Shown: one piece after another, positions 16,673-33,700 of the stretch | Position numbering within the stretch: the stretch's first letter is position 1 | Layout: each line of letters opens with the position of its first letter | Source: Oopsacas minuta | Taxonomy: Eukaryota; Animalia; Porifera | Reading direction: 5' to 3' | NCBI GenBank assembly: GCA_024704765.1 | Contig: JAKMXF010000341.1 | Coordinates: forward strand, 1-64,000 | Length of the DNA: 64,000 nucleotides | The notes under the pieces: generated by a model | Seen by the model: the letters and a program-made list of their open reading frames with translations, nothing else | What the model was told of the DNA's origin: nothing | The model's database searches: none | Translations under genes and position numbers: made by a program

Positions 16673-19089
16673 ATGGAACAAATAGTTAAACAAAATACTG
16701 AGAATAACCAAAGGTCACAATTGGATAAATCCCATCGTCAAAACAAGAATTCTATATCTCATATTTTCTTTAATTCAATACAACCTTCTAATCCTTTAGA
16801 AGTACGTGTTACTCCAGCTCACAGCCCCATTCAGGTAATACATTTACTAATATTTTTAAGACTTTATTATTATATATAATTTGAATTATATGCATATTTA
16901 TAGGGTGGAGGAGACCTGTGTCTCGTGTTTTCACAACAAGATCATCCAGTCCCCCAAGGAGAGAAGTTCCTGCATTTTGACTCAATAATAGCTCCACATC
17001 TAGTAGCAATAAACCAGGACATGGGTTATGCTCTCTTCACACAAATACCTGCTCACCCAAGAAGTGAGACTCTCCAAATATACGTCATGCTAGCAGAGAC
17101 CCGCGCTAAGATAGCTTCAGCTGAATTCACATACACAGATTCCAGTTATAGTCCTTACACGATTGAGGTATTGAAGGGATTGACACAGAATCTAATCACT
17201 AACGAGCACTACAAGAGCATTACTGCAGATTTCTCTAGCAATCAGTTCCATAACACTCAACAACAGACACCTAACCAGTTCTACAATCATTCAGGTGAGT
17301 TAGTCAATTCAATATTACTCTATAGAACATTCTAGAATACTCGTTTATATTATTCTATTTATATCCAGGTTATAATCCAATATATAAGATGTTAGTATTA
17401 GCTGCAGGTCTCGGTCTAGAACCTCTGTTATACGTACTGCTACAGCCCCGCACTCATCATAACCTCCTGTTAATGCCATCGCCTGCTGGCCTCCTGCCTG
17501 AGGACTATGCTCATAGGTTCGGACATCACAGAATATCTGTCTGTCTCGCTCTAGTTAGGAAACAGTAAGTTAGATACATGATAATCTATGTGTTATTTCC
17601 GTTGAATTAATATCAATTCACATCGTATAATTAGTATAAATTATTTCTCTAATTGCAAATTAATTAATGAACAAAGTAAAGTTCATTGAATGTTAGTTAC
17701 GTAATCAGCCTCTTAGCTCTGTTTCATTATACATGTATGGCACAAGTTCAAATAACAACGAATATGTTTAGTATTAGAGTCATTTGCAGATCTTACAGGT
17801 GTTCTAAGATATTGAAACTGTTTAAGTGCACTTCTAGTTCTATGTCTTATTGGAAGTATAGCTCTAAATTAGCATATTTATAGACATCACTGAAACTAAC
17901 CATTACTGATTATGTATTATAATTTGCTATTCTTAGATATGAACATACAAGTGGTGTACAAAATGACGAAACAGAAGATGGTGAAGTGGAGACTACAAAG
18001 CGTGATAATAAATCTAGTTTCTATCCAAAGGGAGATCCTCTGGAGCTCATTAATAGAGGTGGAACAACCCCAAAAGGTAAATAACAATAATAAACTACTT
18101 AACACTTCGGTTTAATATTACCTTTCCAACCATTAATTTATACTTATTTTTTTCACAGAGACTACACAAGCTATAATGGCATATCTCACTAAGCTAATGA
18201 CTCCTACTCAGGTTCAGCTTCAGCCCATACCCTCTCCACCTGCAATCGTATCTACATCTTCTCCAGCAGACAAGAAGACTATAACCAAGGCATGCAGTGA
18301 GGATGTTTTGACTAAGAAATCTTCTGTAGGTAAACAGGAACCTGAAAATGAACCCAGTCCTAAACCTTATGACCGCGGACATTCAACACCAAAACGTAAG
18401 CCTTTGCCAGAATGATTAGCATTTGTAGATAGTCTAATATATTTTATCTCTATCAATTTCTATTTATAGTTGGGAGCTCAAGCAGCAAATCTTCATCTTC
18501 CAATGTGTTAGGAGATTCAGGGTACGAACCTAGCTTCGAGTCTTTCAGAGAATCCCGAGACGGTGACGTAATAACTGGTGAAATAAATCTAATCTCAGGA
18601 CTGAAGTACACTAGGAAATGTGACCTAGGAAGTATCAATTCGATAAACCATCATAAAGTTGATAGAATGCTAGAAAAGGATGCAATTGACCTACTCAATC
18701 AAGAGCTGAAGGGTCTCCGTATGGAAGGAAGACCCATGGTACTCACTGCAAGAGGAGAGTTCGAAGCCACTCTCAAACTAGAGCCCCTACAATCCACACA
18801 AGATTTGCAGAAAGTGTGAGTGTCCCTCATCTTGGGACTGAATCTCTTAACAATTATTATTCTGACTGAATCGTGTGTATGCAGTTTGTATATTTCAATA
18901 ATAATTAATCAAATAAATGAGATTTTTATCTAATTCGCTCATTTCAGCTTTGATTCTCGTGAAGTGAAGATTACCAAATCTGACGAATCAAGTTTCGCTA
19001 TCGTCGGTGGGGACCAAACTGGAATATTCATTCACTCTACTAAGAACACCACTCAGAATCAACGGGCTCCTGGGGGCCAAATACTAGCT
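16673..19089 (+). CDS. Multi-exon gene, 3' end unresolved: DBB/IPT-like domain + ankyrin-like repeats + Ser/Pro-rich linker + PDZ domain(s)
   Basis: Phase-compatible exons 16673-16834 (start uncertain), 16904-17294, 17369-17564, 17937-18076, 18159-18395, 18470-18815, 18948-19089. VRVTPAHSPIQGGGDLCLVF...LFTQIPAHPRSETLQIYV...IASAEFTYTD resembles the AKAP13/ARHGEF28/BCAP N-terminal domain. LAAGLGLEPLLYVLLQ...AGLLPEDYAHRFGHHRI is ankyrin-like. SINHHKVDRMLEKDAIDLLNQ and SREVKITKSDESSFAIVGGDQTGIFIH...GGQILA are PDZ-like. Confidence 0.7.
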
Positions 19090-21475
19090 GTGAGTGTAAC
19101 TCCCCCAGGCGACTACTGGTAATTAGATGGTAGTGTATGCGAGAATTGAAGGGGTTTAGTTAATTTAGCTAATACTCGCCAACCTGACTGTAGAAAATAT
19201 CCAGACAGAAAAACGCTAATTTATTGGAACATTGCGTGAAGTAGCATATTAGCACTTAATTAATTAAACTGGGAGGAAGCAGATTTGGAAAGTTTCGTTG
19301 GGATGTCGCGCTAAAGTGTGGACAGTTGGTAAGTATGCTAGCAATAAATTAGTGGGGTAAGTAATACTCGGATTATAAGGAGTTGGTTGAATGTATATGT
19401 TAATGTATTTTCCATTACCTTATACTGATACTATTCCACGTACGAAATATCAATTGGATTAGTCATTATTGGCATGGCAGATGATAAGCGATGCCAGTTT
19501 CAGTTGTGTTCATATTGGAGATGAGGTACAATGTTTTGTAGCCAAGTTTGCAGCAACAAAATCCCTGAATATTATCCGCCAGTATAATCTCGGTGTAACA
19601 ATATTAATTTACCATGGAGTAATAGGGTAATATTACATATCATTTGCAATCAAACCTGATTTATAGCACCGCCATATAACCGTTACTTACCACAGCTCAC
19701 AGTCAGATTTCTCAGTATAATACCCTGTGTTATATAATTTCCACTGTGTTGACTATTCTGAGATTCAATCAATTCTTAAATCTCAGATATTAGCTGAGAA
19801 ATAAATTCCAGATAAATTTGAGTTAGTTATACGAATTTGTTATTGTTTTATAATTATAGTGGATGCATATTTCGAGGTAACAATTATGCGATTCTATCCT
19901 AATCAATATTTGAATAATTCATAATTCTCTACAATGTTCAATGAATTATTCAGCTTAGAGTATAGTTGGAGAATATAATTTTGCTTTAGTATACAAGGGT
20001 GTGAACAGAATAATATTGCATTTAGTACTGTTGAATTAGATCAAATTGTTAGGTTAAAATTCGTGAGACCTTATGGAAAGTCAATATTGAATTGAATTAC
20101 ATTTGGTTGCAAAGGAAATGACATTACAATGCACATATTCCATATGACATCCTCAAACTACTTAATTTCTTGTCTGACCACCTTCTAGAGTAACAGGGAA
20201 TATGTTGGTGATCTCTTACTGGTAAACCATGGAAAATTCTAAAGTTGTATTTGATTAATCTGTTGTTTGTATAATATACAGTACATCCTCGCAAATCCGA
20301 ACAGCGCTGTTCCAATTGCAAAATAATTCGTTCGGATTAGCGATATGGATAGAAATAATACTATAGGATTTAGGGACATAATTTTTGAAAGTTGTACAAA
20401 CAATGAAAAGGTTGCCGACATATTTAATATAGTAATATGAATTTGTCTACAGTAGAATTGGATACAATTAGTTATTTTTGAATATTTCCAAAGGTTGTAT
20501 AACCTTATGGATCAGTTGAGATTAGCGAGAATTGGGATTAACCAGGTTTGGATTAGCGAAGGTCTACTGTACCGGCATATCAACATGTCGTTAATGCAAT
20601 GATAACGCTTATAAGAATAGCATTTGAGAGTAGCAAAAAATAATTTTTTTTGTCTTTTAGATATACATACATGAGTATATGAATACCGTGTCCAAACGAC
20701 GGTTCTTATAAGAGATATTCACTGCCTCAGGACAGGTTCTTATATGCGGCAGTAATTCAAGGGAGTAGAATACAAATGATTGGGTAAATAGAGCTAGAGT
20801 CCTTGTAACCGGTGCTTTAGTAAAGGCATTTACAGTTATAATCAATGTATTACCCATGTGTGTACAGCAATTACACGCTGTCTACGTAACACACGGCTTA
20901 TCAATAGCTTGACAAACTTGTTGACAAACAGTACTAAGAAATATAGAGTCAACAGCCGTTAACTCGAACCTCAGGGGAAGTTAAATGGTTCCCAATCTGG
21001 GGTCCATGGAACCCTTTGGTCGTCAACGGACAACAGCAGGGCTCACAGGATCCAAACATTTGTACTGCAGATTTGCAGTATGACAGTCCTTTCATTTCGT
21101 AGAAAACCAACGGTCTACCTAAAGCCTACCATGCAGGATGCAACATTGTTGCATTTGTTTATGGAATTTTGAGGGAATTATTTTGCATGCAAAATGTTGC
21201 AAGAAACTTGTTGCATTGAAAAAAGGAACTTTTCTATTTTCTTGCAATAATGTTACGTGAAAAGTAAATTTTTCATACAACATTTGTATTGTACATATAA
21301 CTAGATTTTACACTCTAACACTCTATATTTTGCAATGATAGCAATCATTTGAATGCACTCAAATTCTCCCATAGACCGGACCTAATCCGGACCAAAAAAT
21401 AGTTTCATCCGCCGTTCTGGAACGGACAGGAACATTCTATCAGTGCAGTATATGTACATTATATATGATATTTAA

Positions 21476-24703: not shown

Positions 24704-24871
<168 letters not shown>

Positions 24872-25441: not shown

Positions 25442-26396
25442 CAGGCACGTAGCTACAGGGGGGGCAGTCGCCCCCCCCAGATAAATTTGGAAGTTTTCGT
25501 TTTATATAAATTGTAGTTAACTTATTAGCAATATTGCTCTATTAGCAACCAGCTTTCAGGTCCCTAACGGGATATAATGTTAATTTCGTTGCCTTATTAG
25601 CAACCAAATTTTTGCAAAATCCGAGTTGCTAATGAGCGATCTCCACTGTAGTTAATAGCCTATGTACTTCAACTGCATCGTCAAAACTATGAAATTAATA
25701 ACTCGCGTTGCGATGATGGTTTTAATACTAGACAGGAAGTAACGCTCATTGATAGTAAACTCGTTCTATTTTGATATGCACTGAATTTCTATGTTAAATT
25801 TAATTGAATTACCACAGACCGCTAGTAATTGTTGTCAGAAGTTAGACTGTCCATTGAAGTGATTGAAGCATTGGTGATGCTCTTAGTGTTTCAGTTTTTA
25901 AAGCTTGTTTTATACCAAATTCTTGTGACTATCCCTCAGACGTCTTGCAAAGTTGAGCGAATGTTCTCATCTGTTAAGAGGATAAAAACTCGTTTGCGCT
26001 CACAAATGACCACTGTGCGTCACAACCATATTGCCCTGTTGTCTATTGAATAGATATTGTAGAAACACTTTGCTATAATGATGTGATTGAACATTTTAAG
26101 TAGATGAAGCATCGCAGCTTTCTTTTGTAATGTCAAATAGTATCCCTGAATTGAGTTTAGTATCTTAATAAATGCTCTTACTATATGGCATTCTATATAA
26201 TGTAGACTAGTCTAGTGCTCCATAGCTTAGTAATCTGGTACTTGATGAATTAAAAAGGTTGTACATTTAAGAAAAGGAGACTGGGTTGTACTTGTTATAC
26301 ACAAGTAATTAACATTTCAAAAATATTTATCCCTGCAATTGCCCTCCCGAAATACTTCTTGCCCCCCCTGAATTTCTTGCTCTAGCTACGTGCCTG
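25442..26396 (+). mobile_element. hAT element (ZMYM1-like transposase remnant), 955 bp
   Basis: Perfect 8-bp TSD GATGGGAC (25434-25441, 26397-26404). 14-bp TIR CAGGCACGTAGCTA. ORF 25829-26053 carries the hAT C-terminal dimerisation motif (VTIPQTSCKVERMFSSVKRIKTRLRSQM). A MITE fragment is nested at ~25500-25650. Confidence 0.92.
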
Positions 26397-27745: not shown

Positions 27746-30700
27746 ATGGGTAACCTACCCACTACTATCCTCCCTTCTCTCATTCTACCTGTAGAGCATT
27801 ATGTATCTGAGCTCTCAGAGGTAGATAGACCGCTCAAGAATTTGGGCTCCACCCGCTTCTTCAAAGTAGTGCGAGGTAGACACACAGAGGGCCCTGTTGT
27901 CGTGAAGGTGTTAGTCAAGCATGATCCCAACCTAGTGCTGAAGCAGCATCAAGATCAGTTGTCTTTTATTCTGGAACAGCTGGGCTCAGTCCCTAACATC
28001 CTCCCATTCTCTATCTGGAGAGACTCGGACAGAGCTGCCTTCCTGATACGACCATTTGTCCGCTACAGTCTAGCTGAAAGGATGTTCTCTCTCCCCAGTT
28101 TGGAGCCTCTAGAGAAGAAGTGGATAGTGTACCAGCTACTCACGGCACTGTCCAGTTGTCACCAGTTAGGGGTTAGTTATTTAAATGATCTAACAAGTAG
28201 CTCCTAATCTCTTATACAGGTACACCTCCGAGATACGGTATCCTCGAGGGTAACCGCTTGTAAGAATGTTCGTAGAATGTATTATTTATAATCTTAGGCG
28301 TCGTAAACCATCCGGGTGGCCCAGTAGCACACTCGGAGTTTGAATTGTGGAAAATTCTTCGCGAAAACATCCAAGCAAGTATGGCCACTAATCTAGAGTA
28401 AATAGTCTTCAAATATAGCCAGGATACATCAAAATAGCATAGAACGACAAATTTTCCGCCATGAATTTCTGATAGCGCTAATAACGAATTCTGTTTTTCA
28501 AAATCTAGATATTAGTCATATGCTGAAGAAACGAATATTCGTTTCCTTCGTTTTTATGACAAAGTATTTAACACAGCTGTATCAACTAATTTTGAGTTGG
28601 CAAAAATCCGAAACAGAAATGTGTTATAGAAGATAAATTATATTTTAATTAGTTATGAGAGAAGGTCCAATGTATTGAATACTTAGTAGGTTAGCTCTCA
28701 ATGATTTAGGGAAACAGGGCCTGTTTTGGTCACCGCCGCTATTCAATTAACTGCTAGGATAAAATATTTTCGGCTAACCGAAGAGTGTCATCACCAATAT
28801 TTTCAGTGTTCCAAAGGATTTGAGAAGTACGAATTTATATATAACATGAATTCTGCTTGCTCGGTATTTATGAGATGTGACATTTTATGTCCGAAATCGG
28901 TTAACCAACCACAGCCCTGTGCGAAGCTAAATTTTCAAATTGAGTGGTAAAATATTACGGAGAAATTGCAAACGTAACAATTCGAAAATTATCCATGGTG
29001 CAATGACATAGTAATAGTCAGTTTTCAACAATAAATCTTCGTATTGAATTTGAAGAGATCTACAGGTACATATTTAGTTGGACTATATTTTTCAAAAATT
29101 GGATAAAAGGTTACAAATATAGTGGAACCTGATAATCCGACACCTCTATAATCCGACAGTGTTTATAGTACGAATGAGCTTCCGACTATCACCATCTCAG
29201 GTTCCACTGTTTGGATATGTGATGATTTCACCCATGAAAATCACTGTCCCCTATATTTAATGAAAAACAATATTTTCAATTGCAAGTGAGCAAATAAATA
29301 CTTTCTTTACCCCAAATAACGAACAAAGCATCTTTGAAATCCTCACAAGAACTATTCAACCAATTTTGATATATTTTATTTCTTATACGTATGTTTGTAT
29401 CTTATATAATCAATTAATGATATTGCATATAGTGATAATTTGGACGAAACTTTGTGTCCCTGACATTCTCACTTATCACAAGATCTAATATCTACCAGCA
29501 TATCTACCAGCTATACTGTAGACACATATCGTTGGGCATAAGTATTTTGTGTTTTAGGATGGTATATTGATAATATCATATTTCCCTGATTCTTTTCGCG
29601 GGCATTTTTCGTATGAATTTTTGTGATTGCTATGCCCCCAATATATCTACTCAAAGGAAAGAAATACGAGGAAAGGCATTTGAATTTGTATTGTCGGAAG
29701 CCATTTCGGAGAAGAAACATTCTCGGATTATACAGGTGTCGGTTTATGCAGGTTCCACTGTAATTTCTTCTTTATACAACTTGATTTTCTGATATAATCC
29801 GCTTAGCCAGTAGAAATTTCGTTGAACACGTGATATTATTCCTGCTATATTATACAACTTGTATCTATGTGTACCATATATTGTGACGCATAAAAATATG
29901 TATATTAGCTATCTTATTTACTAATGCCTAGATTAATTTAGTATATAACTTGTATGTAGATTTGTCATGGAGACATTAAAGCTGAGAATGTGTTACTGAC
30001 AGGCTGGAATTGGGTACAGCTAACTGACTTTGCTAGTTTCAAACCTACTTGTTTGCCTCCTGATAACCCAGCCACTTTTTCCTTCTTCTTTGATACTTCT
30101 AGACGTTCCTACTGCTATATAGCTCCTGAAAGGTTCACAGACTCCAAAGAGGTAATTGATTAAAGTGATAAGTACATGCTTACTGAGTTAGTGTATGATG
30201 TATGGTGAATTTATTCATATGTATTTATTTCCATATATAATATTTAATCACGTAAGTATTTTGATAGCTGAATTCAATAGAAATGTCTTCCCAGTCCCCA
30301 CTGGATCCACATATGAGAAATATGAAAATGCGAAATTCTGGTTCAGCGTACTGTGTTCCCCCGTGTAGCCGTTTGGAGCAAGCATGTATTTATATTTTGA
30401 GATGTGGCTAATTTGTTTACTGTATATTCATAAAAACCACAATAAATTTACATATGATTAATCCAAAAGTGTGAAATTCGGATTCAGCATGTTCGATATA
30501 TTTAGTGAAGTTTTATTGAATTCTATTTACTTCCTTGATAAACACGATAAATACATAGTTATGCGACAATTTCAAAATTGCATACCTTAAATCCTTTCCT
30601 TGACAACAGACAATAAACAATAATTGAGATTTAATAATATAGATTCAAAAACTTTAATTTACGTATAGTGACGCCTGTTTCCAATCCAATATCTATTACT

Positions 30701-33700
30701 GATACTCATATATAGGTACAGGAGCTCTCTCCTCGCATGGATATCTTCTCTCTGGGCTGTTTGATTGCAGAGCTATTTACTAACGGACAAGTCCTATTCG
30801 ATCTTCCCCGTTTGTTGGACTACGCTAGCGGTAAATCCTCTCCTGACTCTACGTTAGATCTTATAACAGATAAAGAGATACAATCTCTTGTTCGTCACAT
30901 GATTAACGTGTCTCCCGCTAACAGACACACTGCATCTAAATACCTAGATGTATGTCGTGGTAAAGTCCTTCCTGAGTGCTTCTACTCTTACTTCCATCAC
31001 TTCCTTACTACCTTCAGTGCCTCTGTAGATCCTTCACATCTCAGAATACGACAGTTACACAGAGACATAGATCAGGTGATTATACATTTATTTACTGATG
31101 TTATTACCTTATAATATGGGGATTACACAATATAATCCAATATTCCGGCGATAATACATATACACATTTTATTCATACGTAACGTAACGTTTTAAATATT
31201 ATGGCAAATTAGCATAAATATTATAATGGTATGTGTGATTTCGTTGATCTAATCATAATAGCACTGGAATCCGATTATAAGAACATGTAACTGGCATCCA
31301 CTGTATATAATATGTTTCTATACTTTTTTCTAACAATATTTTCGTTATTAAAGTTATGTACAAATATAATTGTGCGAAACGATTAAAATTACATATATCG
31401 AACAAATAAGGTATATCCTCGATAATATCGAATTGGTACCTTATGGCTTGAATAAATGTATTATTGATAGATAATAATCAATACTAGTCATATATCGTCC
31501 AACTAGTCCCAGTTCGAAATGACGTCATCTGTTTGGTTAAAAGGGTAATATGTGGTTAATAATCTCCCCATTTTAAAGCTATGATAAACGATCACTAGTG
31601 CGTCTTTGTAATTATATGTATAATATCCTCAGATCACTTGATATCAATTCTGAGATCAAAGACGCACTAGTGATCGTTTATCATAGCTTTATAAATGGGG
31701 AGATTATTAACCACATATTACCCTTTTAACCAAACAGATGACGTCATTTCGAACTGGGATTAGTTGGACGATATATGACTTGTGTTGATTATTATCTATC
31801 TAACGCACTTCCTACCTAAACTCATCATAACGTGGCAGAATATCAACCCGCCGCTAAAACACGGAAATGCTATTCAGTGACATAGACCTTGATAAGATAA
31901 AAGAAGAATTTAAAGTATTTGCTAGTATTGATGTCTGTAGTCATCTAACCCTAGGTGCTAGTCAGAATATTAACGAGAGCCTACACGCCACTATCTGGGG
32001 GAACTGTCTCAAAACTAAATACACATCTCTCATATGTGTGTCTATATCCGTAGCATTGAGTGTGTTGTGTTACAATGAAGGGAAATCTGCTCTTGCTGGT
32101 GTTCTGCTAGCTCTCGGGGTAAAACCGTCTCTAAACCCAATCAAAGAGTTTGTCACAGCTGATAGAGAAAGGTGTCGTGTGCCGGAAAGGGGAAGAACCG
32201 TGAAAAGTAAGGCTACCAGACGTCAGCGTAGACTGGACAGTAAGAATAGAGAGAAAGAGAGACGTAAGAAAGATAGAGATGCTGCCCGTATCCCATACCA
32301 GTCTGATAGATTTGGTATTGAAGTTGGAGGAGGCGAAATTACTGCGAAAATGAATAAAACTCATACAAAACAGCAAACGAAATCTAATACTACAGCTATT
32401 GATGCTGGTCCTTGTTCTATTTCTATTTCTACTTCTATTATTACTACTACTGAAGCTATATTGCTGATGATAATACCAATATTGCTAATACTGATATCGT
32501 TGTTGAGAAAGAGACTACTTCGCAAGAAGTTATTCCGAAAGAAGTGATGATACAAATGTTGTAAAACAGAAGAAAGTCAAATCTTATAAGAAAAAAGAAA
32601 AAGTAAAACCTTTGAAGAAGCCCAAATTTGTGAAGCGAGCTAGGATGGTGTCTAATGCTTATTCTGATGGGGAGCTAGTGTTATCTGAGAGAGAGATCCC
32701 TGAGAAAGGAGAGGATGAATTACACCGAAAAAAGGTAAATTCTGTAAGAAAAGAGGAAAAGCAAAATCCATGAAGAAGTCGAAATCTCTGAAGCGACCCA
32801 GGAAAGTGTCTAATTCTGATGAATATTCTGGTGGGGAGCTAGCGTTGTCTGAAAGACAGGAACCTGAAAGAGGAGAGAATGATTTATTGCCAAAAAATGT
32901 TAAATTCTCTAAAAAAAGCAAAGCAAAAACACGAAGAAATAGAAATCTCAAAAGTGAGGTAGGAATCTGCCAGACTCTGAGGATTCTGATTGAGGTCGGT
33001 ATTATCTGAGAGAGATAACTCTGAAAGGAGAGAGCATGAGATATTACAGATGAAACATAAATCTAGTAAGAATCGAGCTAGGAGGGTGTTATCTTATGAA
33101 GAATCTAGTGATAAGTCTGATAGTAACTCTGACGGGGAAGAGAGTGATGGGGTATGTCAGGACTGTGACAGCAGGTTACCTACCGGACTGCTTGAAGGAG
33201 AGTGGCATTGGATTGGCTGCGAAATATGTGAGAATTGGTCCTATGATTCCTGTCTTGTCATTCATTTGAACGATTATGAGCATAGAGACATTATTTGTAC
33301 ACGTGTTCTTCTTAAATTTGAGTTATATATTTTGACTACAGCATGTATTATAATACATAAGTTGTTATATAATAAAATTTTTAAAATATATACATAGTAT
33401 ATATATATATTCATTAAAGGAGGTATAATAATTTTGAATTGCTAGCCTTTTGTGTTTAAGATGTCTCCAGTAGAAATCTAGACATACCACAGGGAGATAT
33501 GTATTATAATCATTCTCAATGCCAGCTGTTGTTAATTTACTTATACTCTATGTTGTCAAGAGTCTCTATAGCATAATATATCCTATCACTGATTTGGCTT
33601 GATAAACTTATATACCTTGATTGAATGAAATTTGTATTTAAATATCTTTTAATCGATTAGGCACATATAAAATGATCATATAATCCTGTAGGTGCTGGAT

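Follow-up and report, generated by a model that had tools for sequence, protein, structure and literature searches.

A conserved glass-sponge gene with a candidate DBB-type N-terminal module and no PDZ signal in its last exons

What kind of protein is encoded by the chain of seven exons that lies at positions 16673 to 19089 (+ strand) of contig JAKMXF010000341.1 from the glass sponge Oopsacas minuta (assembly GCA_024704765.1)? The first 64,000 nucleotides of this contig, called here the window, were analysed around it. The original prediction, made from the letters alone, had seen in this chain a hidden gene with a new domain architecture, in which a DBB/IPT-like domain and ankyrin-like repeats, as found in the adaptors BCAP, BANK1 and Dof, would be joined through a Ser/Pro-rich linker to PDZ sequences of MAGUK type. 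The exon chain is a real gene which is already annotated and present in a single copy. Its product, about 490–550 amino acids (aa) long, is probably a cytosolic scaffold or adaptor that is found in glass sponges and carries a DBB-type module made of a TIG domain and an ankyrin-like part. The PDZ part of the proposal is a resemblance at the level of short motifs, and profile methods give it no statistical support.

The exon chain is considered real because several features of the sequence agree. All seven exons are open in the frames that are required to join them and add up to 1614 nt, or 538 codons, up to position 19089; the six introns all have GT..AG borders with T-rich acceptors, and their GC content (0.13–0.30) is set against 0.33–0.46 in the exons. 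In addition, a codon log-odds score (LLR) trained on 8,098 codons from long open reading frames (ORFs) elsewhere in the O. minuta genome yields +0.20 to +0.47 per codon in the predicted exon frame only, while the introns score negatively. The seven in-phase exons with canonical splice sites were thus correctly predicted, down to an exact agreement with an existing database entry. The GenBank record “hypothetical protein LOD99_8718 [Oopsacas minuta]” (548 aa) contains every exon translation as an exact substring and in the same order, and the gene is therefore not a hidden one. The annotation, which stems from BRAKER/Augustus with RNA-seq hints and not from full-length cDNAs, extends exon 7 past 19089 to a stop codon ending at 19122. 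No paralogue was found in the O. minuta genome, which here and in all genome-wide searches below means the assembly of 61.46 Mb in 365 contigs, with contig C341 as the source of the window.

The protein can be read along these exons, all of which lie on the + strand. Exon 1 (16673..16834, residues 1–54 of LOD99_8718) is open in frame and begins with a start codon that is the first ATG downstream of a stop; it encodes a polar N-terminus of 40 aa and the first strand of a putative TIG-like domain (..EVRVTPAHSPIQ). The core of this domain, of presumed DBB-type IPT/TIG-like character, and a helical stretch would be encoded by exon 2 (16904..17294, residues 55–184), followed in exon 3 (17369..17564, residues 186–249) by what looks like an ankyrin-like helix-hairpin pair (MLVLAAGLGLEPLLYVLL... 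/ GLLPEDYAHRFGHHRISVCLAL). Exon 4 (17937..18076, residues 251–296, codon LLR +0.47) corresponds to an acidic linker and exon 5 (18159..18395, residues 298–375) to a linker rich in Ser, Pro and Thr, which bears out the Ser/Pro-rich linker described at the outset. A run of serines opens exon 6 (18470..18815, residues 377–490) and precedes a conserved C-terminal domain of about 90 aa with no assigned fold. Exon 7 (18948..19122, residues 492–548), the last coding exon in the annotation, contributes a tail of 57 aa.

How widely is this protein distributed? Searches were run with the individual exons, and at full length with three database records, among them LOD99_8718 and its orthologue from the glass sponge Vazella pourtalesii. 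An exhaustive phmmer search with exon 2 among 1.84 billion representatives returned as sole relative the cluster of the Vazella protein (486 aa, 88% over exon 2), and relatives were confined to glass sponges besides two bacterial matches. The latter are long repeat proteins which align with residues 64–118 of exon 2 (AEFTYT..SYSPYT) in 6–7 stretches each (E 3e-5 and 3e-4); the cause is probably not homology but a short beta-strand motif present in many copies. The orthologue is expressed, since the Vazella protein derives from assembled transcripts (Trinity/TransDecoder, EukProt EP00800, gene TRINITY_DN97_c0_g1, seven isoforms). A search started from it returned LOD99_8718, with an overall identity of 80%. 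Exon by exon, identity amounts to 63% for exon 1, 87% for exon 2, 85% for exons 3 and 4, 76% for exon 5 and 83% for exon 6, and the C-terminal domain of exon 6 (84%) is conserved on a par with the TIG part. In a word search, exon 2 also matched an ORF of 128 aa (85% identity) on an ENA contig of 536 kb; the ORFs on two ENA contigs, of 536 kb and 477 kb, are 85% identical to exon 2 and lose similarity directly past the donor.

The Vazella transcripts also bear on the splice junctions between 17564/17937 and 18815/18948 for which confirmation had been sought. Proteins from spliced Vazella transcripts align without gaps to LOD99_8718 across junctions 1/2, 2/3, 3/4, 4/5 and 5/6, and the ‘complete’ Vazella ORF starts at the same Met as O. 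minuta exon 1. The chain is thus confirmed up to junction 5/6, while junction 18815/18948 has no match there. Intron retention is frequent in the orthologue: isoform i15 keeps intron 4, after exon 4, in frame and gains 23 residues, and retention of intron 5 in some isoforms leads to an early stop.

What, then, is the N-terminal module? The reading as a DBB-type domain derives from the ESM Atlas. Exon 2 alone leads to IPT/TIG clusters (0.88), whereas residues 38–262 match a cluster of AKAP13 fragments (0.97, 219/256 features), one labelled ‘DBB domain-containing protein’ (0.96) and two that carry PF14545 (0.93 and 0.91), of which one is BANK1; neighbours of the same residues carry Ank and Ank_2. 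Among the structural alignments of the Atlas model, the best are with the DBB and BANK1 clusters (TM 0.51 and 0.47), and weaker neighbours include RHD (TM 0.40), ARHGEF28 (TM 0.55 by the row's length), plexin and TIG clusters. In BCAP, the DBB consists of a TIG domain and two helices, followed by ANK, and the TIG domain dimerises the protein (PMC7128310). Two AlphaFold2 (AF2) models, both of low confidence, place strands at about 58–131, helices at about 139–161 and two helix pairs at 188–255, an order that fits the BCAP arrangement of TIG, two helices and ANK (PMC7128310).

A number of results weigh against this reading. A Pfam hmmscan with the exons, LOD99_8718 and the Vazella protein gave no match to any family at E<=10, DBB, TIG and Ank included, where DBB is represented by Pfam PF14545 with a cut-off of 22.2 bits. 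A search of the PDB by sequence, both with exon 2 and with a profile of the family, returned noise only and did not reach the BCAP DBB entry 6SWS. By profile-profile comparison (hhalign), the probability of a match to a TIG profile built from the genome was 0.8%, with RVTPAHSPIQGGGDLC placed on the N-terminal motif of TIG. The AF2 models, computed from alignments of five and six rows, had pLDDT values of 30 and 33 and are unusable, and Foldseek with the second model against the PDB found noise, with nothing below E 0.3. As for the Atlas, about 1/100 shuffled proteins reach 0.95, parts of proteins have no calibration, and the feature and structure searches count as one source. Moreover, neither a conserved YxxM motif nor a Tyr-rich docking tail is seen when O. 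minuta and Vazella are compared; the only YxxM, YTPM at 186, is found in Vazella only and falls on the exon 2/3 junction, where the ankyrin-like part begins, rather than in a tail. Two further searches were blank: six-frame translation of the genome with PF14545 had no match, though the controls also gave none anywhere, and PF01833 (TIG) had no match in the window.

These negative results could mean that DBB homology is lacking altogether and that the N-terminal module belongs to an orphan protein of glass sponges, with another or a generic Ig-like fold, whose Atlas neighbours share its composition or its pattern of secondary structure. The lack of any HMM, PDB-sequence or profile-profile match to DBB would fit such an orphan, as would the exhaustive exon 2 search, which beyond the Vazella cluster brought up only the two bacterial repeat proteins, and the Atlas background with shuffled proteins and uncalibrated parts. 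In addition, Hensel and colleagues failed to identify Dof, BANK or BCAP in Amphimedon, Mnemiopsis or Trichoplax (PMC7260276). Other results speak against an orphan: four separate clusters of DBB/AKAP13 type were reached at 0.91–0.97 with 187–219 features in common, the structural ranking of the Atlas starts with DBB and BANK1 before it passes on to TIG-bearing RHD, plexin and ARHGEF28, and exon 2 taken alone leads independently to IPT/TIG clusters. The IPT-type start motif (V.P...P..GG..L) also falls at its expected place in the TIG profile, although not significantly. We therefore regard the orphan as unlikely, and DBB-type homology of the N-terminal module, as judged from language-model features and the Atlas model, as somewhat the better bet. 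Residues ~40–250 would most likely correspond to a TIG (Ig-like) domain of DBB type, with short helices and a pair of ankyrin-like hairpins behind it. The proposal of a DBB/IPT domain with ankyrin-like repeats is thus carried by the Atlas features and the Atlas model, while Pfam, the PDB sequence search and hhalign do not follow it; of the structural comparisons that had been suggested, AF2 and Foldseek gave nothing usable and the Atlas model points to DBB and BANK1.

The 3' end of the gene raises a second question, namely whether exon 7 is part of the protein. Its codon score of +0.36 per codon exceeds that of 145/145 open pieces of comparable length from non-coding sequence of the window, and the preceding intron 6 is AT-rich, 132 nt long, begins with a GTGAGT donor and ends in a CAG acceptor that is rich in T. 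For these reasons, exon 7 is probably translated in O. minuta, either as a tail without counterpart in Vazella or as one that was missed there through intron retention. Against this stands the finding that the Vazella ORFs hold no counterpart of exon 7 and that the exon 6/7 junction is seen in no transcript examined. In Vazella, 4/4 isoforms extending into exon 6 carry the label ‘complete’ ORF and end in ..LKLEPLQST and a stop, five codons ahead of the O. minuta donor at 18815, and this junction is therefore unsupported by the nearest relative.

One may ask, accordingly, whether the annotated exon 7 is an extension made by the gene predictor and absent from the mature mRNA. Read without splicing, the O. 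minuta frame meets a stop at 18819, and the protein would end one codon past 18815 (..QDLQKV, 491 aa), which nearly matches the 486 aa of the Vazella protein with its complete ORFs. The annotation, as mentioned, was made with RNA-seq hints and not with full-length cDNAs, and a word search with exon 7 found no relative; this says little, as short ORFs are rarely called. Yet codon usage in exon 7 equals that of the confirmed exons and surpasses every null open piece, and the interval ahead of it resembles the other introns in being AT-rich and in its splice signals (GTGAGT, T-rich CAG). The Vazella isoforms are, moreover, not independent, since all have one assembled 3' end in common and retain introns frequently; they amount to one observation only. 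An early end at 491 aa is for these reasons rather improbable, and translation of exon 7 is the reading that we retain.

Does exon 7, once translated, encode a PDZ domain? It contains a motif that resembles the first half of a PDZ (FAIVGGDQTGIFI...GGQILAV) and runs on to ..AVSVTPPGDYW and a TAA stop at 19120–19122. Read-through included, the frame downstream of the exon 6/7 junction holds 57 residues, while a complete PDZ with its six strands and two helices takes about 80–90; exon 7 is therefore too short for a PDZ. Pfam PDZ (PF00595) finds no match on exon 6, exon 7 or the whole of LOD99_8718, even at E<=10. The corresponding six-frame search of the genome yields 111 matches, down to 16 bits, with genuine PDZ genes of O. 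minuta at 23–77 bits, and 0 of these matches lie in the window. A custom PDZ HMM, built from 20 PDZ domains of the O. minuta genome and run unfiltered on the window's full set of 1,427 stop-free pieces, reaches its maximum of 5.4 bits on exon 6 (helix-B region) and gives exon 7 only 2.0 bits (rank 16); a second PDZ half scores nowhere in the 64 kb. Comparison by hhalign with a PDZ alignment from the genome assigns a probability of 4% to exon 7, 3% to a candidate exon 8, 4% to exon 6 and 1% to the family alignment, and a PDB sequence search with exon 7 returned noise only. The PDZ of exon 7 and the ‘PDZ half’ of exon 6 are, as far as the sequence tells, motif-level resemblances without statistical support.

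It could still be argued that exon 7 supplies the first half of a genuine PDZ, that the GTGAGT at 19090 is used as a donor, and that one or several unannotated exons downstream complete a scaffold of DBB, ANK and PDZ. Exon 7 is indeed coding-like, FAIVGG..GIFI and GGQILAV stand by eye at a PDZ-like spacing, and a perfect GTGAGT (19090–19095) directly follows ..GGQILA. The region 19090–19700 has a GC content of 0.33–0.42, above that of the confirmed introns of this gene, and holds a phase-0 piece that can be read as a second half. The annotation reads through this GTGAGT, and no acceptor with a coding-like exon was found behind it. The piece in question, candidate exon 8 (19481..19630, +), was rejected: its codon LLR is +0.05, with 30% of the null pieces scoring higher; its putative intron has a GC content of 0.38, compared with 0.13–0.30 in the six accepted introns, and a weak pyrimidine tract, for which these introns reach 0.60–0.80; and it has a probability of 3% by hhalign, has no PDB match, is absent from the annotation and lies outside the 25 best pieces of the custom PDZ HMM. 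The blank Pfam result on exon 7, on LOD99_8718 and in the six frames of the window, the low scores of the custom HMM and of hhalign, the null-like codon usage and poor acceptor of candidate exon 8, the want of any other coding-like piece on the + strand ahead of the next gene and the Vazella ORF that ends upstream of exon 7 all speak against a split PDZ, which we consider very improbable indeed.

The new architecture of DBB, ankyrin and PDZ is not supported, given that neither DBB nor PDZ emerges from the profile searches and that the Vazella ORFs end before the ‘PDZ’ exon. The same holds for the PDZ with its degenerate C-terminal half, and for the donor after 19089 with exons beyond, where the annotation reads on to the stop at 19122 and no credible downstream exon was found. 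The case invites some caution with half-domain motifs picked by eye (GG...GIF, GDxIL-like): a PDZ call was made that no statistical method backs, and the architecture hung on a last exon that is untranslated in the transcripts of the nearest relative.

A MAGUK or DH-PH module had also been anticipated downstream, and was not recovered. Guanylate kinase (PF00625) has no match on contig C341, no separate search for SH3 being made, and none of the 38 genome matches of RhoGEF (PF00621) is on this contig. The codon score detects no coding-like piece on the + strand between 19123 and a kinase gene at 27746, and the stretch 18816–19900 is unique in the genome and not repeated DNA. The next downstream gene (27746–31114, +) has protein-kinase exons with weak Pkinase matches at 27746–28204 and 30737–31111 and starts with MGNLPTT..; it may be a Vps15/PIK3R4-type kinase. 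Two smaller elements lie in between. A stop-free piece at 24704–24871 (-) resembles the terminal part of an ATP-binding domain from an ABC transporter and has coding-like codon usage on both strands; the piece, 56 residues long, matches no Pfam family at E<=0.01 and could represent either a small exon or the fragment of a gene. A remnant of the C-terminal dimerisation region of a hAT transposase is found at 25829–26053 (+) (PF05699, E 8.9e-4, below the cut-off).

What could such a protein do in the cell? By analogy with BCAP, the TIG part would make the LOD99_8718 protein a dimer, and the ankyrin-like part together with the conserved ~90-aa domain of exon 6 would bind partners, with the Ser/Pro/Thr-rich linker as a flexible and probably phosphorylated spacer. 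DBB homology, at the level of the language model only, dimerisation and a role as scaffold are in this sense inferred, while the gene model, its conservation and the expression of the orthologue are matters of direct observation, as is the missing PDZ signal.

In evolutionary terms, LOD99_8718 is a candidate for the first sponge protein with a DBB module. Glass sponges might carry a true but very divergent DBB module (TIG plus ankyrin), coupled with a new, conserved domain at the C-terminus that takes the place of the Tyr-rich tail or of the GEF part, and the origin of the module would then be moved to the base of the animals or before, as compared with Eumetazoa in published work; we give this wider claim slightly less than an even chance. 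If the DBB reading is true, a dimerising signalling module predates FGFR, BCR and TLR, the receptors served by it in flies and vertebrates, and the sponge protein would show what the module was joined to before TIR domains, phosphotyrosine tails or RhoGEF domains were gained. Since the adaptors were not identified in Amphimedon, Mnemiopsis or Trichoplax (PMC7260276), a DBB module in a sponge would add modestly, but genuinely, to what is known.

How does LOD99_8718 compare with known systems? Its likeness to PDZ scaffolds and MAGUKs (ZO-1, DLG5, CARMA) is confined to short motifs picked by eye, with FAIVGG, GIFI and GGQILAV from exon 7 and INSINHH...DAIDLLNQ from exon 6, whereas it differs from them by the lack of a PDZ profile signal, its 57-residue tail and the absence of GUK on the contig. 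A TIG domain followed by ankyrin repeats is also the arrangement of CAMTA and of NF-kB p100/p105. LOD99_8718 would share the order of TIG and ankyrin with these proteins, and RHD clusters are among its weaker structural neighbours (TM 0.40). However, about 40 residues precede the TIG part, which leaves no room for a CG-1 or Rel-homology part, and the Atlas feature matches are DBB/AKAP13 clusters and not CAMTA or Rel. The TIG domains of CAMTA1 and NF-kB have themselves been compared with that of BCAP (PMC7128310).

A closer likeness is found with the N-termini of AKAP13 and ARHGEF28, RhoGEFs of the Lbc type, which provide the best Atlas feature matches of residues 38–262 and which appear to carry a DBB-type module themselves; the difference is that no C1, DH or PH domain follows in LOD99_8718. 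With BCAP (PIK3AP1), BANK1 and Dof (stumps), the sponge protein would have in common the whole order of an Ig-like TIG domain, short helices, ankyrin-type hairpins and a long low-complexity region. It differs from them in that no TIR domain stands at its N-terminus, the ORF starting ~40 aa before the TIG part, and in that Pfam DBB does not match. Since it fails this Pfam membership test and lacks the tails of the DBB adaptors and of AKAP13, LOD99_8718 is filed as a variant of the DBB kind and not as a member, one in which a conserved C-terminal domain of ~90 aa replaces the Tyr-rich tail.

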